64,000 nt of DNA from Trichosphaerium sp. ATCC 40318 (Eukaryota > Protista > Tubulinea), in NCBI GenBank assembly GCA_038496445.1, contig JALMLS010000081.1, positions 62,001-126,000 on the forward strand, in the 5' to 3' direction. The notes below the pieces were generated by a model. That model saw only the letters and a program-made list of their open reading frames with translations. It had not been told where the DNA came from and ran no database searches. Position numbers and translations under genes: made by a program. Positions 2,238-49,132 of the stretch are shown here, piece by piece (position 1 is the first letter of the stretch; each line of letters begins with the position of its first letter).

Positions 2238-3038
2238 TTATTTTTCTGTCTCTGTGACAAGCAATTCCGTTGCAATTTCTTGTAAAAAACCTTTGTGGGT
2301 AAGGGCACCGCCTTGGCACTTGTACAGAATAAAAGCATTTGTGAGGGCATAGTAAAACCAACCAACAAGAAGTGTCACTTTCCATTTTTTGAACCGGCAA
2401 TCTGACCAATAGGACTTGACCAGCTGGCCAAATTGATCACTGTAGCCCTTGGTATCATCATATATTTTCAGAACATCTCTTCTCTTGCTGTTGTCAAATG
2501 AACTTTTGTCATCATCCACACAGTAGAGAGTGGTGGCCAACTTTACAATTCCATTGTTATGGGTTGCGGTAATATGATGGTGCCTTCCAGTTGTTTTCAA
2601 CCATTTTGCAAATTGAAAGAAGGATTCATTTGGTGTAGGGTGTGGCTCAATCAAAGGGTTGATAAAGTCAATTAGATACCTAGTGCAATCATTGAGACAC
2701 TTGGATTCTATGGCCCAGACGTCTGGTTTCTTTATGTTGTGAGTTTTTATATCACACTCAAAATGTTGAGCTGGAATACGGATTTCATCAACACATGTGA
2801 AATAACCTGGTACCATGTGGCGCTTGAAGGCACTCACTAGCAAAGAATGTACCAAGGTAGCATCAAATTTCATGTTGGCAGAGATGTTGAAGTAGTGATC
2901 AAGTGGCAGCAAACCCTGTTTTCCTGGAAATGAAATTTGTACTTCACCTGTGCTCCATAATGTGCGAATATTCCTTACTCCAATAATCCCACGCCACAGC
3001 ACTGTGCCAAAGAATTTCTTCAAATGATTAGCACTCAC
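2238..3038 (-). mobile_element. piggyBac-like DDD transposase remnant, internally deleted
   Basis: Intronless ORF with CVDEIRIP...KKPDVWAI (cf. VDE-xx-P...KPxKYGIK) and YDDTKGYSDQF...KKWKVTLL...ALTNAFILYK (cf. YNxxMGGVD...KWW...NAYILY). The segment around the second catalytic Asp is missing. No convincing TIRs found. Confidence 0.75.
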
Positions 3039-38095: not shown

Positions 38096-40367
38096 CTAGA
38101 TGAGAACCACAATGGCGATCACAATGAGAGCTATTATAGCTGGCGATAGACCGCTGTTAGAGCTTTGGTTGCATTTATCTTGTACGGAGAATAATACAGA
38201 TAAGTGACCTAAAACCTCAGTGCTTAGACTGACATGATCCTATTTTAGGATGTACCTCGTTTATCGTCAATTGGTGTACCGGTTGTTGTCGTACAACCCC
38301 TGTTAATTTCTTTTATGTTAATGTCCACTTCAACACAGTTTTGACTATAAAGAAATATGTCCCGTATCTAAATCAAAGTTACAATGTGTGACGTTTCACT
38401 TGATCACGTGCTTCGCCATCTATTATATTATCCGCAGTAAATTTGATATCGCCTGTTACACTTGCACATGCTGTGTAGTAATTAAATACTCAATTGGTTT
38501 CATATAGGACGTACCGGTAAATGTGAGTACAGAGGCATCTGCAAAAGTCTGAGTTGCATTGATTGTTACATTGGCATTGAATACATAGGTCCCATTCCAC
38601 AGTGTAGGTACTATGATGGTGACAGGATCATCTGCAATCCAATTATCTGATTTTTAAATAAAGTAAGGAACTTCCAGCACATGACCAAGTTGCATTACCG
38701 CATATACAATTAAAATCTGGGAGTTGGGTGCCTCCACAAGAGGTTTCTTTGATCCATTCATCTAACAAAAAGGTTCAACGGCATTCGTTTGTTTCTCTTT
38801 TTCGTACTCCCAGCACAAAAGTATTCATTTGAAGGTCGTGTATCTAGACTGCATTGTCTCTATCGTAATTGACGTTAATGGGACTATAAAGCGTTGTTTT
38901 TGTACCGACTGGTATGCGCCAATATCTTCCAAACCCGGTAATCGAATGACACCATCTATTGTCGAGGACTGTTACTAAACTACAATTTGTATTGAGCGTA
39001 CCAATGTCGTAGTTTATGGTACTCTGACTCGATATTGGTACTGTTGCGATTTAAGGCTTGGAACTCAGGACGTTAAAGGAACGTACCATCAAATATACTT
39101 GAGGATTGTTTTGCATTTAAACGGTAGTCTCCATTGTCAATATCTGAAAAAAAACAAGCCTCTACATTGAGCACAGTTGGTCCATATTGTTTGCTTGTCA
39201 TCACCAAAGAGTTGATGAAAGTCCAATCGTCAATGCCGTCTTCGTCTTCGTTTTCCTCAATCCTAGTAATATCTGTGTGCATTAGTGTTGAAGTAATAGC
39301 GCTCATGTGTGCCTTTGCCGAACGTTCCATACTCAAGAGTAAACTTCCCATCCTTTTTAGTATCGCAATCAGCGAGTAGCGCTTGGGTATGTTAGATGTT
39401 ACCAAAAAGTACAACTGGTACCCGCTTCTATGTTGCCGTGGATCAAAACATTTGACACAACAAAATGTGCTGAATCGTGACAGCTATTAGAGAAATACGT
39501 CAAAGTTTGTTTTAGAATACAAAACTCGTACTCAAAAATCTTGTTTGATTCACATGTGTTGGAGTTGTACATAAATTTATCTACAAGATTCAATGAGCGT
39601 CATGTAATTTAGGAGTAGTACCAACTATTACAACCGTCTCCACACACTTGCTTGTTGACCTTATAAACTCTAAAGGCGGTTACAGATGTAGGTATTACGT
39701 GGCATACTCTCAGTGCACCCAGTGGCAGTACTATCAACAAGTAGTAGTCGCCCACTTTCTACATCAATTACTTCTTTGATCTTGTCAGAGTAATCGGCTG
39801 TAAAACTCATCTCTCTAAATTCTACAAGATTACTTTGGGTGCAGGCTGTATTTATGATAATTTGTTCGTCTTCTTCACTAAAAGTAATTTCTCCATTTCG
39901 AAAAGTGATGTCGTGTGAGTCTACGTCAAAGTTATGTTACAACGAGACCATGGAAACATACTGCCGTTGATGGTTATTATGGGTGATGCCTGTTTGTTGA
40001 ACGTAAAGCCTTCAGTGGTAATGTTTGTGCAGTTTGTTAGTGTGATAGACTCGAAATTTATCTGGCAAGTTGTAAATTTTAAAATTAGAACACATTTGTT
40101 TTTTTGTATCACGTGCCCTGGTGTTACCATCCCAAACGACCCTAATGTCGCTGAAGCCGTCCCAAGTCATATTATGAAGCCCATCACCGCTTATTTGCAC
40201 GCAGTCGTCACTCTGCAAATGATATGTTGGCCTGAAACCATATTATGTAAACGTACTATAGTAACACTGCCCAAATTATCAACTTCTCTGCAAGCCTCGC
40301 CAAAACCAAACAAGCATACCAGTATACACAACATAACCACGCGGTGTATAGCATTAGACGCTAACAT
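38096..40367 (-). CDS. Secreted/surface protein, tandem paralog A (C-terminally shortened)
   Basis: Signal peptide MLASNAIHRVVMLCILVCLFGFGEA, many short introns, ends SNSGLSPAIIALIVIAIVVLI-TAG. Confidence 0.75.
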
Positions 40368-43152
40368 GAGGTTCGAGTTGTGTGAAATACAGAAAAGTGT
40401 TCTAAACTATTCCTGTGATAAAAAAGATTGTTTACACCAAAAACCATTTATTTTCCCCTCAACACGCCCTTGAACAACTGTAGCAACTCATTTACCCAAT
40501 TTCAAATAGTTGAATTACAGCGATAGATTTAAAAATGAGCGTCATTGCCACTAATTACTTTTGGACGTTAGCCCGTATTCCAATTAACGTCGTGTATGGA
40601 GTAAAGGGTGTAGGATTTAACAGAACGCTATTTCAGGTCAACTCCTTTGAAGAAAGGTTGACATTCAAACAAACTAGCAAATCAGCACTCCAAAGAGGAC
40701 ATAGCCACTCATTGATCACCGGCAGTATCAAACAGCAGTGAACAGTAATTTTTTTTTGTAACAAATAAGCAGCCTTCACGTGGCACTACATTAAGAGGCT
40801 TGCTCTCGAACCGTTTTACGCTTGAACGGCGTAATCTTGCTCCGAAGCTGTGGTACTTTGAGTCCAACAACTACAATGACTACAACAGCGATGAGAACCA
40901 GAATGACGATCACAATGGCAGCTACTGCAGCTGGCGATAGACCATTGTTAGAGCTTTGTTTGCATTTATCCTGTACGGAGAATAATACAGAAAAGTGACC
41001 TAAAACCTCAGTGCTTAGGCCGACATGATCCTATTTTAGGATGTACCTTGCTTATCGTCCATTGGTGTACCAGTTATTATCGAACAACCCTTGTCAATTT
41101 CTTCTACGTTGATGTTATCCAGTTCAGCGCATTGTTGACTATACAGAAATACGTCCCTTGTCTAAAATACGTTACTATGCGTGCCGTTTCACTCTATCAC
41201 GTGCCTCATTGTCTTTTATATTATCAGAATCAAATTTGATATTACCTGTTACGCTTGCACATGCTGTGTAGTATTTAATATGCACTGCTTTCGTGTTACA
41301 ATACGCACCAGTGAATGTGAGTACAGAGTCATCTGCAAAAGTCTGAGTTGTATTAATTGTTGCATCATCATTGAATACATAGGTCCCATTCCACAGTGTA
41401 GGTACTAAGATGGTGACAGGATCATCTGCAACCCATGTGTCTGTGATATTAAAAAAGTAAGGAACAGCATGTGAGTAAGTTGCATACCGCATTTACAATT
41501 AAAATCTGTGAGTTGGGTGCCTCCACAAGAGGTTTCTTTGATCCATTCATCTAACAAAAAGGTTCAACGGCATTCGTTTGTTTCTCTATCGTACCCCCAG
41601 CACAAAAGTATTCATTTGAAGGTCGTGTATCTATACTGCATTGTCTCTATCATAAATGACGTTAATGAGAGTGTAAAGCGTTGTTTTTGTACCGACTGGT
41701 ATGCGCCAATATCTTCCAAACCTGCTAATCGAATGACACCATCTATTGTCGATGACTGTTACTAAACTACAATTTGTATTGAGCGTACCAATGTCGTAGT
41801 TTATGGCGCTCTGACTCGATATTGGTACTGTTGCGATTTAAGTCTTGGAACTCAGTACTTTAAAGGAACGTACCATCAAATATACTTGAGGATTGTTTTG
41901 CATTTAAACGGTAGTCTCCATTGTCAATATCTGAAAAAAAACAAGCCTCTACGTTGAGCACAGTTGGCCCATATTGTTTGCTTGTCATCACCAAAGAGTT
42001 GATGAAAGTCCACTCATCAATGTCGTTTTTGTCTTCATCTTCCTCAATCCTGGTGATATCTGTGTGCATTAGTGTTGAAGTAATAGCGCTTGTGCGTGCC
42101 TTTGCCGAATGTTCCATACTCAAGAGTAAACTTCCCATCTTTATTAGTATCGCACTCAGCGTGTAGCGCTTGGGTATGTTAGATGTTACCAAATTATACT
42201 GGTACCCGCTTTAATGTCACCATGGATCAAAACATTTGACACAACAAACTGTGCAGAATCGTGACAGCTGTTAGGGAAAACGTCAAAGTTTGTTTTAGAC
42301 ATATAAAACTCGTACTCAAAAATCTTGGTTGATTCACACGTGTTGGAGTTGTACGAAAATTTATCTACAAGATTCAATGAGCGTCATGTAATTTAGGAGT
42401 AGTACCAACTGTTACAATCGTATCCGCACACTTGCTGTCTGACCTTATAAACTCTAAAGGAGGTTACATAAGAAGGTATTACGCGGCATACTGTCAGTGC
42501 ACCCAGTGGCAGTACTATCAACAAGTATTAGTCGCCCACTTTTTACATCAATAACTTCTTTGATCTTGTCAAAGTAATCGGCTGTAAAACTCATTTCTCG
42601 AAAGTCCACCTTATTATTTTGGGTGCAGGCTGTATTTATGATAATTTGGTTGTCTTCTTCACTAAAAGTAATTTCTCCATTTTGAAAAGTGATGTCGTGT
42701 GAGTCTACGTCAAAGTTATGTTACAGCGGGACCATGGAAACATACAGTCGCTGACGGTTATTATGGGTGCTGCCTGTTTGTTGAATGTAAAGCCTTCAAT
42801 GCTAATGTTTGTGCAGTTTGTTAGTGTGATAGACTCGAAATTTATCTGGCAAGTTGTAAATTTTAACAATTAGAACACATTTGTTTTTATGTATCACGTG
42901 CCCTGGTGTTACCATCCCAAACGACCCTAATGTTGTTATACCCTTCCCAAGTCATATTATGAAGCTCATCGCCGCTTATTTGCACGCAGTCGTCACTCTA
43001 CAAATGACATGTTGGCCTGAAACCATAGTATGTAAACGTACTGTAGTAACACTATCTAAATTATCAACTTCTCTGCAAGCCTCGCCAAAACCAAACGAGC
43101 ATACTATTATACACAACATAACCACGCGCTGTACGGTAGTAGACTCTAACAT
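38099..43152. repeat. Direct tandem duplication of about 2.3 kb (38099-40367 vs ~40892-43152)
   Basis: Long near-identical blocks, e.g. 38720-39070 vs 41510-41855; introns are also alignable. Confidence 0.95.
40791..43152 (-). CDS. Type I surface protein, tandem paralog B
   Basis: Signal peptide, same exon structure as paralog A, full TM helix and basic tail KVPQLRSKITPFKRKTVREQAS. Confidence 0.78.
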
Positions 43153-43305
43153 GACGACCTCGTATGTTTTATACAGTTTGTGCTCAAGAAAAGTGTACGG
43201 AAAATGGTAGTTAAGTGGTTGTCAGAACTCTAAACTACCTCCGCACGTGTCTACAAGACAGTGCTAGAATAGTGGCTTCGTAAGGTTTTCGAGATTGTGC
43301 GTGCG

Positions 43306-46300
43306 ATGCGCTCTTTACCCAAATATAGTTTCCTTAATCGGCTTGGGACTCTTCAGCTGTTAAGGCGCTCTTGTCTGACATGCTGCAAGGGCTACGCACT
43401 GCGTTTACATCGAGGGCGTGTAAAACACTAATCGTTGGGATAAATAAACGAGCGATTACAGCTAAGCGTCAAAACCGCCATTATTGCGATGACGACGAAG
43501 GTACAACGCCAAAAAAACGTCTTTTGGACTTGTTACGTCATATTAAACTCAGTAGTTATCAAAGAACGCCCAAAGAGCTTTTGGGAGGATAAAACAAATC
43601 ATAGAGTGTTTCTAGATGAGGTTTGACATTATTTTGTAGCGCCATGATTAATAGCGTGTACACGCCTGACAAAACGCTGTAGTGCGCTAAAAAATTGAGT
43701 CTGGACGAATTACCGCAACAATGGTTTACTGTCAAAAAAGACGAGATTGTTGAACTTGGTGGCAGGCCACTACTTGAGCACGTCTCATAACCACAAGGCT
43801 TTGTTCCTTACTGACATGTCACGTCTGTTTTTGTAGAAAGTATGATGGCAATTTCTTGAATTCCCTCAAAGCCACATTTCCTGAACACTCATGGGACATG
43901 CAACTCATAGGCAAGTTCCTTCCTTCTTCACCATGATAAATCTTATTTTTTGTGTCTTAGAGAGTAGAGTTGATGGGTTGTCCTGGTACAAGACAGATCA
44001 CCAAGAAGCCTTCTTGGAGAGAGTATGGACATATCTTTGTGGTAGTTTTACTGTTCTAACTGAAACTTAGATTTGCGAGCACCTTGAGATGAAGGACTTG
44101 AATGATTGGTACAACGTTTCTAGAATACAACTCAAGAAAGCAGGAGGTTCCAATCTCTTAAAGTACGCCACACCAGACACTATTTTGAAAAAACCTATTT
44201 ATTGATGTATTGTCCACAAGACGTTTTAAAATGGGAGTACCGCAGCTATTACAGACAATGTATCCAGATAAAAATTGGCGTCTATGGCAAATTAGTATGA
44301 TACTACGAAACCTATCACGTGTTTTTAATACTCACATTTTGTGTATAGAAGCAAGACGGCAGAAGGGTTTTTGGACTATTCAAGCCAATCAAGACAACTT
44401 TATTGCTTGTGTACGATCTATGCACACACACGATCAGTTTTTTTGACCTTGTCATCTTTTAGCTGAAAGAAGACCTTGAAATAAAACAAGAACCAGAAGA
44501 CTGGTACAACGCTGGGCTCAATGCAAATAGGATTAAGAACATGGGTGCCATTGGCCTTCTCAAGTGCGTAGAATAATTGGACTACCCTTTCCAGCCACGT
44601 GACATACATCTAAGCTGACTACGTATTGTTTGTTAGGGAGTACGATAACTCCATTCCCAAGATGTTCTCAGCGTTGCTTCCTGGCACAAAGTGGAATATA
44701 CGTCGTCTCACAAGTAAATTGAGTGAGAAGGATTACTTTGCAATTGAGGCGAATAGGAAAATATTCCTAGACGAGGTCTACACTATGCAAACAGTCTGCA
44801 GCTAACTCCCAATCAGCTAGGCAAGATCCTCAATTTCAGCGGCATGTCTGAGTGGTACAGCGTATTTCCAGCAGCACTAACCAACTACGGTGGCGGAGAG
44901 CTGTTAACGTATGGGTTTTAAAAATTGTATCCCGTTGCTTACTATACGATAGGTTATACAATAACTCATTGCGTGAAGTGTTAATGAATGTGTATGATGG
45001 CTACGAATGGGACTTGAAAAAATTCGGTATGTCATTCATTGTATACAGGCTGAGGGGTTTGTGCTGACATCAGTCCCAGGTCCTACAGACGAGGAACTTG
45101 CGCAGATATCTCGAAAGGACGAAGAATTCAGAGCACAAAAGAAACAGTTAACAAAGGTGATTTCGGTTTAAATACTGGTTAACTTACTCAATTGCAAATT
45201 AGATTGGAAGAGATCTGGGTGTTAAGAATATACCAGGAGATTGGTACAATGTAACAATAGCGAGTATAGTCAGGAAGGGTGGCAAATTTGCGAGGTACTT
45301 AAGGCTGTATACATGTAATCAAACTAATACCTTGGTTAGCGAGTACAATGATTTGTTAGATTTGCTAGTGGCATTCTACCCTGAGCAACAATGGGATTAC
45401 TTCAAAGCAAGGTAGACCAATCACCATTGCTTTCGTAGTTACGGGTTAGCTAAAAGATTGCTTTAGGAATGAATCTATTCCAAGCGATCTCACCAAACTG
45501 AAAAAGTTCTTTGATTGGGTGGGTGATAGAGTTGGTGTAGAGCAACTTGACGATTGGTATACTGTAAAGAAAAAAGATGTTATGGCCTATGGTACGCGTA
45601 TTGAAATTCATCCTATGAAGACTTACGAGATTGTTCAACAGCGGATCCTGTAATTACTCAATGTGGCGGCGATTTGATTGACGTCCTACATCAAGTTTAC
45701 GAGCACCACAACTGGAAAGACTGGATGTTTAAACCGTTGCGATCTGATATTTGGTATGACATCGATACAGTAGTGCAGTGGATACGGTATGAAACACCAT
45801 ATTCCATGTTTGTTGTTGAATGATTTATTTTCTATTTAAGAGATTCGGAAAAAATGTTTCGCATTGAGAGACCTTCGGATTGGTATCGTGTCACAAAATC
45901 CCAAGTTACAGCCAATCAAGGAAATTCTCTTGTTGCACGGTATCGCGATAATTTTAATCAAGCAATGAGTATAGTATACCCACAAGGGGAGGTCAGAGGC
46001 GAGCTGTTATTCGATAGCAACCCTGGTCTTACCAAAACGTGCGTCCTCAATGTTCAACAGCGTTCCCCAACTGACTTGTACTTCGTCCTAGAATCCTTCA
46101 AACGCTTATTCCTCGCTTGTTCCCAGATGATGAGGTTGTAAGAGATTTCGCACATCCATGTTTGAAGCTGGCAGATGATATCAAGGCGCTTGGTGTTTTT
46201 AACGACAAGCTGGACTTTTATGTACCTACTAAAAAAATTGCCTTTGACTTTCAAGGCAAGCAAAACATTGGTATCATAGCAAACTCAACTGACGATATCG

Positions 46301-47833
46301 TTTTACAGAGGATGAGTTTAATTTACCTGCATCTGAGCGTCAAATGAGACCAGCATATGATTTCCACGCATTCTATGCACAAAAGACAGAAGCTTGTGCC
46401 AAAGAAGGTAATACAAAACAAACAGCCATAGAGGGCAATAGATTAATCATATCGAATATAGGTATAACACTGATACCTGTCCCTGGATGGTGGCGATATG
46501 ATGCTGATACTCTTATGGCTGCCATCAATTACTTAAAACCAGAAGCCTTTGGTGGAGACAAAGACAAAGCACGGCCAGTCATGTTCACTCCTGAAAATCA
46601 GTTTCAAAGAGGTACAATCATCTAAGATGTACAACAGCGAGGCAACACATTAACATGTACTCTACTAGGTAAAACTATACAACAACCTTGCGATTGGGAC
46701 CAAGAACAGGATCCAACAGGATGGTACACGGTTTCAGCTTATGAGCTTACACAATGTTGTCGTTACCTAACTATTTCTGTGTTAGGCTCATCTCTGAAAA
46801 GTATGATGGTATAAGAGCGTACTGGGACGGCGAAAAGTTCATCTCTAGAAACGGAAAAGTGCTTGGTATACCGCCTCCAGAATTCATAGAAGGCTTCCCA
46901 AAAAATATGACATTAGATGGCGAACTATGGTCCGTCTATCCCACCCTTACACAGCCCCTAAATTGAAATACGCAGGTCTGGTTATGGAGAACTACAAAAG
47001 GTGTTGACAAGTATAACTAGACAGCGCTCAGAGGCTAAAAAGAAGTGGGATCGTACGCACCACGACTTTTTTGCAACATGCTGACTTGTGCTAGAATTGG
47101 TGTATCACATTTTCGATTCGCCGTCTATACATCTACCTTTTGCACAACGCTACGAACTGTTAAGAGAGAAACTTATCCCTAAGGAGCATAAACACGCAAT
47201 CGTGATTGAACAGTATGAGTGTAAAAGCAAAGAGCACTTACTGAAAGACCTCGATAAAGTAGAGGCCATTAAAGGTATGGAATACCTTTTTGACTACTTT
47301 TTTGTACCTCACAACGCTAACCATTATCTAAAAGGAGAGGGCTTAGTTATACGCAACAAGTATGCGTATTACCTACCAGGACGGACATCCCAAGTACTCA
47401 AAGTCAAGGTAAACTGCTTTTCGTTTTTTGTGTTGTATTGCTCACAAACGTTTGTAGAAATCAGTGGAGATGGAAGTGAAGCTTGTTCGTCCATCCACAT
47501 CAAACAATTATTTGCTCGTAGAGTTGTACGTATAGCAGAATATACACGTGGGTTTTGCTAACTTCCGATAGGCCTGGCGGAGGTGAAATAAGCATAAGGT
47601 GTCAGACAAGTGACTATAAATTCCCTCCTGAAGTTGGCGCGATTTTGACAATCCACTACCAGGGTACAACTGCTGCTCAACGAGATCTCAAGTTCTTTAC
47701 AATTTAAACACTAATAATCAACGTAGGTATATCGCCAACTACAGGTAAACCACAATATCCATGGTTGCTTCGAGAGCGGTTTGATGTGACATGGGATGAA
47801 GTCAAGGAAAGACACAATAACCAAAACTTGTAA
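43306..47833 (+). CDS. Fusion: putative mitochondrial presequence + seven Trp-rich repeats + RAP/PD-(D/E)XK-like domain + ATP-dependent DNA ligase
   Basis: Hand splicing gives one frame. Ligase motifs SEKYDGIRA (I), LDGELW (III), IFDSP (IIIa), EGLVIR (IV), LKVKK (V) and an OB domain. LDFYVPTKKIAFDFQ...KEGITLIPVPGWW precedes the ligase. Confidence 0.85.
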
Positions 47834-47954
47834 ATTAAAATAATAATAACCAACCAACATCGTCATTGAAAACAATGTCTGCATCTGACACGGTGAAATG
47901 TGTTGACGACAAATTGACGTTTTGTTAATTCTAAAACAAAATCGTTGGTGACAC

Positions 47955-49132
47955 ATGGCAACACAGTTTTTAGGATTAGTGAGCAACTGCTTCGCCGCTC
48001 AAAGAAAACAAGGAACGCCACTTCCAGAATTAATAAAACAAGCCCAAAGCAAAGGCTTTAATTACATAGAACTCAGACAAACGCATATTGGGGAACCATA
48101 CGAGACTGGCCCGAAATGCGTGCCAAATCCAGAACAAATTGGCAAAGTAACCGCTTTACTATAAACCCATACGCGTATTAACGTCATACACTAGCTTGCT
48201 ACTCAATTCCCAGACGTTGGGTTCAATTTGGCTGTGGCGTTACCAATTCTCAGCGGAGAGTACGTTTACCTTTAAAACAACCATCTTACAAAGCTGAAGG
48301 CTGTCAACGGACGATGAAATATTCCAACAAGGCTGTAAAACAGCTGCAGCACTCGCAAAAGGCGCTTTTAAGCAGCCATTCCTCCGTGTAGGCAAGTGCA
48401 TTGAGTAAAAGGACGTTCGAAGCTAATAAACCGGTTCAGTCGACACCTACACCGTCGCTACTGCCTTTGAAAAAGTGGATGAAGCACGTGTAACTGCTTC
48501 TCTTAAAACTTTATTGGCAGAGCTCAGGAAAGTAGCTGGCAAGGACGCCACCCTCGTCATCGAAAACTGCAAGCAAGACTTTGCCAAACACATGCGTGTA
48601 GCGGTACGCAGAAAACAAAGAAAAAAAAAAGACGTCAAGATTAATGGTCTCTTTAGAATGCTGCATCTGCCAGCTGTGAAGATATCAAGCTGTGTTGGGA
48701 TCCATGTAACTTGAAAACACAATTCAAAGCAGAGGACTCTGAGGCACGCGCTGCACAGATTCAAGACGCAAACACGGTACACACGGCCACAGATAGTATT
48801 TACCAAAAACAGGCATGTTGATTACTCTTGTTAGATTGGCATGATGCACTTGAAGCAATCAGTCAATGGTGACACCATCGATACGATAGCAGATGTGCGA
48901 AAAACTATTGAGGGAGAGAATGCTCACGTGATCTGTAGGGAGATGTAGACTGGACAGCACAGGTAAAACGTGTTAACGACTTAAAGTACAAAGGACCTAT
49001 CCTGTTTGAAGTCAAGAGCACAGACACCCTATGGACCAAGATTGATGAGGTACCTCTTACTAGTCAGCTATCACGAACACTAATTGTCTAAAGGGACTCA
49101 AATATGTCCGTGGTTTGGGTTTGGCAGTTTAG
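47955..49132 (+). CDS. Xylose isomerase-like TIM-barrel protein (sugar phosphate isomerase/epimerase family)
   Basis: GFNYIELRQ, LVIEN, LCWDPCN, MMHLKQ, GDVDW, YKGPILFEV. Confidence 0.75.

Follow-up and report, generated by a model that had tools for sequence, protein, structure and literature searches.

Previous studies have described Lig E as a ligase that seals DNA nicks and cohesive ends with a minimal scaffold (PMC7470946), and eukaryotic Lig E proteins with added PBZ modules are present in several eukaryotes including Amoebozoa, while kinetoplastid ligase k may be a divergent Lig E form (PMC10665377). In a second group of described systems, the helical-repeat RAP proteins of organelles (the human FASTK family, Chlamydomonas OPR-RAP and apicomplexan HPR-RAP proteins), the RAP signature consists of three non-polar residues, an acid, a non-polar residue, a further acid and G-P-x-H-F, with L...G..VV later on; RAP domains keep their catalytic residues in only about 50% of members, and a published survey with hidden Markov models (HMMs) detected no RAP proteins in Amoebozoa (PMC8190603). 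Here we characterize a gene at 43306..47833 (+) of a stretch of 64,000 nucleotides (nt) from Trichosphaerium sp. ATCC 40318 (contig JALMLS010000081.1, assembly GCA_038496445.1), which is called the window below. Its predicted protein of 997 amino acids (aa) carries a C-terminal Lig E-type ligase behind seven repeats of about 76 aa, named DWY repeats after their core, and a candidate nuclease-like domain. This architecture is real and unusual. Taken singly, the parts are of known kinds, namely Lig E, a RAP-like tail that follows helical repeats, and an unnamed repeat close to DUF4046; neither the DWY repeat in a described role nor its fusion with a ligase was found in the literature or in a library of 1.84 billion proteins. 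Our overall reading, which we hold to be evenly poised between right and wrong, is that one nuclear gene places a Lig E ligase behind a targeting module made of the repeats and the nuclease-like domain, and that the ligase would seal nicks at the sites bound by this module.

The Lig E-type ligase and its gene model

The C-terminus of the predicted protein is a Lig E-type ATP-dependent DNA ligase with intact motifs. The nucleotidyltransferase domain, placed by alignment with homologues (aa 743-910, 46695..47408, +), contains motif I, KYDG, at aa 757-760 (46799-46810), with K757 (46799-46801) as the adenylated lysine, and motifs III, IIIa, IV and V follow in order when compared with the homologues P0007 and P0008 (LDGELW at 795, HIFD at 830, EGLVIR at 887 and LKVK at 907). 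The OB-2 domain (aa 911-997, 47458..47830, +) ends in the motif VI-like segment PQYPWLLRERFD and was aligned up to residue 259 of the 265 residues of P0007. Moreover, the spliced aa 743-982 are colinear over eight exons with full-length 265-aa P0007 (135 bits) and with P0008 (123 bits), by which the ligase exons of the gene model were validated. The original prediction of an intact ligase, with the KYDG lysine, motifs III-V and an OB domain, was therefore confirmed, and so was its type, a minimal bacterial ligase and not LIG1/3/4: P0007 consists of PF01068 and PF14743 (residues 199-262), is an NCBIfam PRK09125 equivalog, and has 8u6x, 4d05 and 6gdr as its nearest solved structures. The motif I exon of the window itself matched 4d05 (E 1.7e-7) and 8u6x (E 2.5e-7) in the PDB, and the OB exons of the window alone gave no Pfam match. 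Apart from Ame-Lig, we take these three structures to be Lig E structures. Ame-Lig is named as a Lig E in a review.

When the ligase exon 47097-47408 was searched against 1.84 billion representatives, ten proteins were retrieved (best E 5.6e-6), all of them short minimal ligases, and no fused orthologue was found in this search. All ten alignments fall into two stretches and skip residues 60-79 of the exon, which confirms the in-frame intron 47275-47334. The core shared with 4d05, 8u6x, 6gdr and the eukaryotic AvLigE and MvLigE is the nucleotidyltransferase and OB-2 pair without a DNA-binding domain of its own, including KxDG and motifs III-V; here, in contrast, this core makes up the C-terminal quarter of 997 aa, behind the repeats and the nuclease-like domain, and its motif VI-like segment is altered. 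Because 742 residues precede the core in a eukaryotic fusion, we refer to a Lig E-family domain and not to a minimal Lig E protein; the minimal scaffold without appended domains, together with the periplasmic signal, that characterizes bacterial Lig E sensu stricto is not the arrangement of this protein. The ligase is probably active.

Targeting modules appended to Lig E are a recurring theme, since PBZ modules (PMC10665377), BRCT (in P0002) and a Lys/Asp/Glu-rich tail (in L004) are attached to other eukaryotic Lig E proteins, and the repeat array described here is a new module of this sort. L004 5579-7361 (JGI metagenome 3300012894) is an environmental eukaryotic Lig E, in which the exon ahead of the catalytic core encodes the long, low-complexity Lys/Asp/Glu-rich tail and no DWY repeats. 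The locus of P0008 (L005-L007), which is among the closest full-length relatives of the ligase, presents a conserved block of small genes on the same strand; Ku, an FtsK/SpoIIIE-like ATPase and, immediately ahead of the ligase gene, a metallophosphoesterase belong to it, and this block looks like a phage or mobile element with an end-joining set. Other ligase matches sit on short contigs.

The locus is probably one nuclear, intron-rich gene. We built the model by splice-aware dynamic programming on codon usage and splice signals, followed by hand correction according to the repeat register and ligase homology. It comprises 30 exons and 29 GT-AG introns between the start ATG at 43306, which is the first ATG downstream of the nearest upstream in-frame stop (43270-43272), and the TAA stop at 47831-47833, without a stop across the 997 codons of the + strand. 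The introns are 37-73 nt long (median 54 nt), GTA and GTT predominate among their donors, and most of them have a CTRAC-like branch motif 11-27 nt from the acceptor. Three introns (46408-46461, 47275-47334 and 45295-45339) are in-frame and stop-free. Because the introns are very short and several are in-frame and stop-free, gene calling based on open reading frames (ORFs), or of the prokaryotic style, would read through them; the largest single ORF within 43200-47950 is at most 158 codons.

The junction between the ligase and the part ahead of it was characterized separately. Ligase homology starts at aa 743 in the exon 46669-46723, and the preceding exon 46462-46611 encodes the last stretch of the nuclease-like part together with a linker of 40 residues. 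The 57-nt intron joining the two exons (46612..46668, +) has a splice score of 5.0, which is among the best of the model. No stop was present between the domains, and the only in-frame ATG read there lies inside exon 22 (46462-46611). In addition, a 5.4-kb environmental eukaryotic contig, which also holds an NSRP1_N gene, carries same-strand ORFs without Pfam matches, including the repeat protein P0011, and a PF01068 ORF 28 nt later; this contig is a second, independent case of repeats followed by a ligase. A single polypeptide with repeats, nuclease-like part and ligase, as originally predicted, is thus the best reading, given one frame, the score of the boundary intron and the order on the P0011 contig, and a single transcript is very probable.

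The repeat array, the nuclease-like domain and the N-terminus

The seven repeat cores are located at aa 80, 155, 232, 311, 394, 465 and 539, with spacings of 75, 77, 79, 83, 71 and 74 aa. The period is therefore 71-83 aa with a mean of about 76 aa, so that the seven units and all the cores listed in the original prediction were borne out and its period of about 68 aa had to be corrected. All units lie on the + strand: R1 (aa 52-126, core QQWF, 43576..43974), R2 (aa 127-201, core NDWY, 43975..44359), R3 (aa 202-282, core EDWY, 44360..44727), R4 (aa 283-365, core SEWY, 44728..45120), R5 (aa 366-439, core GDWY, 45121..45479, with introns of 37 nt and 45 nt), R6 (aa 440-510, core DDWY, 45480..45742) and R7 (aa 511-585, core SDWY, 45743..46021). 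In leave-one-out comparisons each unit scored 28-57 bits against the profile of the other six (53.9, 56.7, 37.8, 38.6, 32.2, 31.3 and 28.4 bits for R1 to R7), and 1000 shuffles of the unit peaked at 14.5 bits. The mean pairwise identity among the seven units is 20%, and the framework that they share is W..F..L..DWY.V..GG..LL..Y..L..YP..W; conservation is confined to about 11 framework positions and the rest are variable, without an evident hypervariable pair among the seven units.

The introns recur at corresponding positions of the units. A phase-0 intron is present 13-14 aa ahead of the core Trp in R1-R5, a second intron lies 15-19 aa past the core Trp in R1-R5, and a third recurrent position is often located at the unit boundary. 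These positions fit the tandem duplication of a three-exon unit and give independent support to the exon model.

AlphaFold2 models of the repeat are all-helical with about five helices per unit, for P0011 with a predicted local distance difference test score (pLDDT) of 70 and for the R5 core with a pLDDT of 66. A Foldseek search of solved structures with the repeat model gave no match, and the best VIA-align Z of 3.4, to helical DNA-binding domains of the tyrosine-recombinase/Ndc10/ALOG type, is below the chance level stated for that tool and counts as no more than a lead. Units of PPR, OPR, HPR and TALE proteins are about 33-40 aa long, form one helical hairpin and have few specificity positions, whereas the units here are 71-83 aa long with about five helices.

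Between the array and the ligase we observed a candidate RAP/Vsr/DUF559-like domain (aa 586-735, 46022..46673, +, motif core 46210-46493), which was delimited by its motif pattern: TILQTLIPRLF..EV, LDFYVP..KIAFDFQG, a helix ending in KEG, and ITLIPVPGWW, in this order. The LDFY..AFDFQ and KEG/ITLIPVPGWW motifs appear only when the predicted introns 46271-46308 and 46408-46461, whose splice signals are both good, are removed. The former, 38 nt long (46271..46308, +; splice score 3.9, CTGAC branch 17 nt from the acceptor), keeps the AFDFQG strand in frame, and an alternative 89-nt intron, 46222-46310, would remove the AFDFQG motif. The latter, an in-frame intron of 54 nt between KEG and ITLIPVPGWW (46408..46461, +; splice score 3.6), would add 18 residues if retained.

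In the hhalign pairing, whose score is weighed below, LDF..AFDFQG is set against LDF..VELDGGQH of the Vsr/DUF559 kind (e.g. E. coli YcjD), and the next helix and strand against YD..G and its hydrophobic strand; the domain here differs in having Asp as the second acid and Gln as the third, and in the loss of the His. The catalytic pattern is thus D...D-x-Q versus D...E-x-D in DUF559, with the first two acids kept, and the replacement of the usual acidic residue by Asp (AFDFQ), which had been read from the sequence at the start, holds for the second acidic position. Among the features of the RAP signature, the hydrophobic-acid-hydrophobic strand with its Gly, the later Gly with a hydrophobic strand, and a P..WW tail are kept, but the second acid (Gln instead) and the P, H and F of GPxHF are absent. 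Compared with the FASTK, OPR-RAP and HPR-RAP proteins, the layout of a presequence-like N-terminus, helical repeats and RAP-like motifs is common to both; however, their repeat unit is 35-40 aa versus 71-83 aa here, no RAP HMM signal was obtained here, and a ligase follows the RAP-like domain, unlike in those proteins. An endonuclease-like fold is slightly favoured, and an active nuclease is doubtful. Because the motif is D...D-x-Q where DUF559 has D...E-x-D, we expect cleavage to be weak or absent and the domain to serve mainly in binding or nick recognition.

The N-terminal 40 residues (43306..43487, +) are basic, acid-free and presequence-like, with 9-11 Lys/Arg and no Asp/Glu in the two splice variants scored. 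Three splicings of the first ~100 nt are possible, with intron 43328-43389, intron 43403-43461 or intron 43328-43461. The basic, acid-free character noted originally was reproduced in both variants, and the string given for it corresponds to one of the three splicings. As the N-terminus resembles a presequence, the mitochondrion is a sensible guess for the location of the protein, falling just short of an even call.

Relatives of the repeat

No match to the repeat exons, to the nuclease-like exons or to P0011 was found in Pfam, NCBIfam or PADLOC. Among 5.8 billion proteins, the profile A2, built from the units of the window, picked out one, namely P0011 (E 2.2e-16), which is 120 aa long, originates from a JGI metagenome and spans one and a half units without a break in its ORF. 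The word-index search with P0011 as the query returned no protein besides P0011 itself. When P0011, A7 and the nuclease-like exon were used to scan for loci, no match was found in metagenome contigs, and there was likewise no match in genome contigs (A7 only) or viral contigs (A7 and P0011).

With the P0011 model, Foldseek against AlphaFold-DB clusters gave five matches at 30-42% sequence identity over 113-117 residues, three of them A0A7S4IN.. entries and the other two M5RIS0 and A0A1P8WKU5. Two of the former, A0A7S4INU5 and A0A7S4INM7, bear the automatic name 'RAP domain-containing protein (Fragment)' and matched P0011 at 30-35% identity (E 0.04, probability 0.97-0.98); this naming of two proteins that match the P0011 repeats is the one positive hint for RAP. 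The R5 model of the window had one of these RAP-named A0A7S4IN.. proteins as its sole match, which was weak (E 2.4). M5RIS0 and A0A1P8WKU5 are uncharacterised proteins of about 390 aa with 36-42% identity to the P0011 repeat, and from their accession series we take both to be planctomycete.

The Atlas clusters nearest to the R7 exon and to P0011 are unnamed and mostly from Amoebozoa (Tubulinea, Evosea and Discosea), with scores of 0.90-0.93 and 186-223 shared features, which agrees with the amoebozoan relatives mentioned in the original prediction. DUF4046 (PF13255) is a more distant Atlas neighbour, the language-model feature scores across the nearest clusters being 0.85-0.93, and the predicted model of one amoebozoan neighbour matches DUF4046 models with a TM of 0.77-0.78, which refers to the shape of that neighbour. 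The link to DUF4046 thus comes from language-model features and from the shape predicted for a neighbour; the DUF4046 HMM gave no match to P0011 or to any of the exons at E up to 10. According to the Atlas, DUF4046 is mostly from Bacillota; it has no known function, and no paper that mentions this family was found in the literature search. By these neighbours the repeat is placed in an unnamed, mostly amoebozoan family near DUF4046, and it may have bacterial relatives, namely DUF4046 and the two presumed planctomycete proteins.

Proposed working, rival readings and surroundings

We propose that the seven all-helical DWY repeats of ~76 aa and the RAP/Vsr/DUF559-resembling domain of ~150 aa would form a targeting module, that the array together with the nuclease-like domain would bind particular nucleic-acid sites, most likely of DNA, and that the bound module would bring the C-terminal Lig E to the site, where the ligase would seal nicks; the protein may act in the mitochondrion. 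DNA is the more likely substrate because the ligase is of the Lig E type. Helical-repeat RAP proteins and other Lig E fusions offer an analogy, according to which binding of nucleic acid by the array and positioning of the ligase are probable; site-specific binding by the repeats is a more tentative proposal that falls somewhat below an even chance. A long shot is a recognise-cut-ligate system of amoebae, in which each unit would read part of a DNA (or RNA) target, the RAP/Vsr-like domain would introduce a nick there and the fused Lig E would close it again; such a system would be protein-only and programmable, and its paralogues, differing in array and tail, would each act at sites of their own, e.g. 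in the mitochondrial genome.

If the fusion is real, it would be a further way in which eukaryotes harness a bacterial-type Lig E, with a long repeat array in the place of PBZ or BRCT modules, and the presence of both a nuclease-like fold and a ligase in a single repeat-guided protein would raise the possibility of site-directed processing of nicks in organellar or nuclear DNA. If the RAP-like fold is confirmed, the family would be a divergent and possibly expanded RAP counterpart on a new repeat type in Amoebozoa, missed by the survey mentioned above (PMC8190603). The locus also provides functional context for a widespread amoebozoan domain without an assigned function.

Several points weigh against the targeted ligase proposed here. 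The gene model is a prediction from genomic sequence alone, and its N-terminal exon structure is ambiguous. The confidence of the repeat model is middling (pLDDT 70) without a convincing match among solved structures, and for this reason nucleic-acid binding by the repeats is an analogy. The motif VI-like segment reads PQYP..R.R.D versus PRFP in relatives. The key motif of the nuclease-like domain hinges on an unusually short intron (38 nt, 46271-46308), and for this part of the protein Pfam on the exons (E up to 1) gave no RAP, DUF559 or Vsr match and phmmer on the exons against the PDB (E up to 10) gave no match. hhalign of the spliced domain with a DUF559 profile (E. coli YcjD relatives) fell in the expected register at P 0.13, which is not significant and was obtained with a narrow profile (at least 54% identity) and a single-sequence query; in an HMM test, the real domain sequence ranked 179th among 2000 shuffles. 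Of the RAP or PD-(D/E)XK-like domain that had been predicted, the motifs are present and a significant match to RAP, DUF559 or Vsr profiles was not obtained. Finally, where eukaryotic Lig E has been characterised, its role is in the DNA-damage response of the nucleus (PMC10665377).

Because the characterised eukaryotic Lig E proteins are nuclear, the main rival is a nuclear DNA-damage or repair ligase, in which the repeat and nuclease-like module would bring Lig E to lesions in chromatin, with a basic N-terminus that would be a nuclear signal or unstructured. That those proteins are nuclear repair ligases, are induced by radiation and bear PBZ modules (PMC10665377), and that others carry BRCT (P0002) or a Lys/acid-rich tail (L004), agrees with this account; however, 9-11 basic and no acidic residues among the first 40 are typical of presequences, and in all lineages studied so far a RAP-type domain that follows helical repeats is organellar (PMC8190603, PMC9181182); we regard nuclear repair as unlikely. 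A further rival is an organellar RNA-processing factor of the FASTK/OPR-RAP/HPR-RAP kind, whose repeats would read RNA and whose ligase would join RNA or RNA-splinted ends. Helical repeats followed by a RAP-like domain are indeed the layout of those proteins, and two matches to the P0011 repeat carry the RAP domain-containing name, but Lig E belongs to the ligases that seal nicks in DNA (PMC7470946), the unit has 71-83 aa and not 35-40 aa, and no RAP signal was obtained at the HMM level; we consider this function improbable.

The low identity of the units to one another (~20%) and the possible bacterial relatives among the fold matches of P0011 would also suit a fast-diversifying selfish or conflict family, either homing-endonuclease-like or defending against mobile DNA, in which the ligase would limit self-damage. 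Known defence families in PADLOC gave no match, however, no paralogue or mobile-element signature adjoins this copy, and the frame is intact over 30 exons, which makes such a family very improbable. An artefact of the gene model, whereby two neighbouring genes, one for the repeat and nuclease-like part and one for the ligase, or a pseudogene in decay were taken for a single frame, would be favoured by a model drawn from genomic sequence, by introns of which several are in-frame or very short, and by the in-frame ATG located 25 codons ahead of the conserved DPTGW. Against it stand the boundary intron, with its score of 5.0 among the best and its exons only 57 nt apart, the same repeats-then-ligase order on the unrelated P0011 contig, and the 997 codons without a stop, and we hold an artefact to be very improbable.

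The region is eukaryotic nuclear DNA with about 40% guanine and cytosine, and genes of the RCC1, LRR, Rap-GAP and SPRY kinds are among its neighbours, as is a piggyBac-like transposase ORF. The ORF 2238-3038 (-) contains a DDE transposase domain of the piggyBac type (PF13843, E 1.1e-13). No second copy (paralogue) of the ligase gene was found within the 64,000-nt window. A direct duplication of 1.36 kb with 92% identity (39014-40369 and 41801-43154) ends about 150 nt upstream of the ATG at 43306; translations of minus-strand ORFs in this duplication gave no Pfam match and resemble parallel beta-helix repeats by eye. On the other side, the next ORF (47955-48164, +), a 69-aa fragment without a Pfam match, begins about 120 nt past the stop of the ligase gene. 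As the next gene apparently starts at 47955, the genome is compact here.

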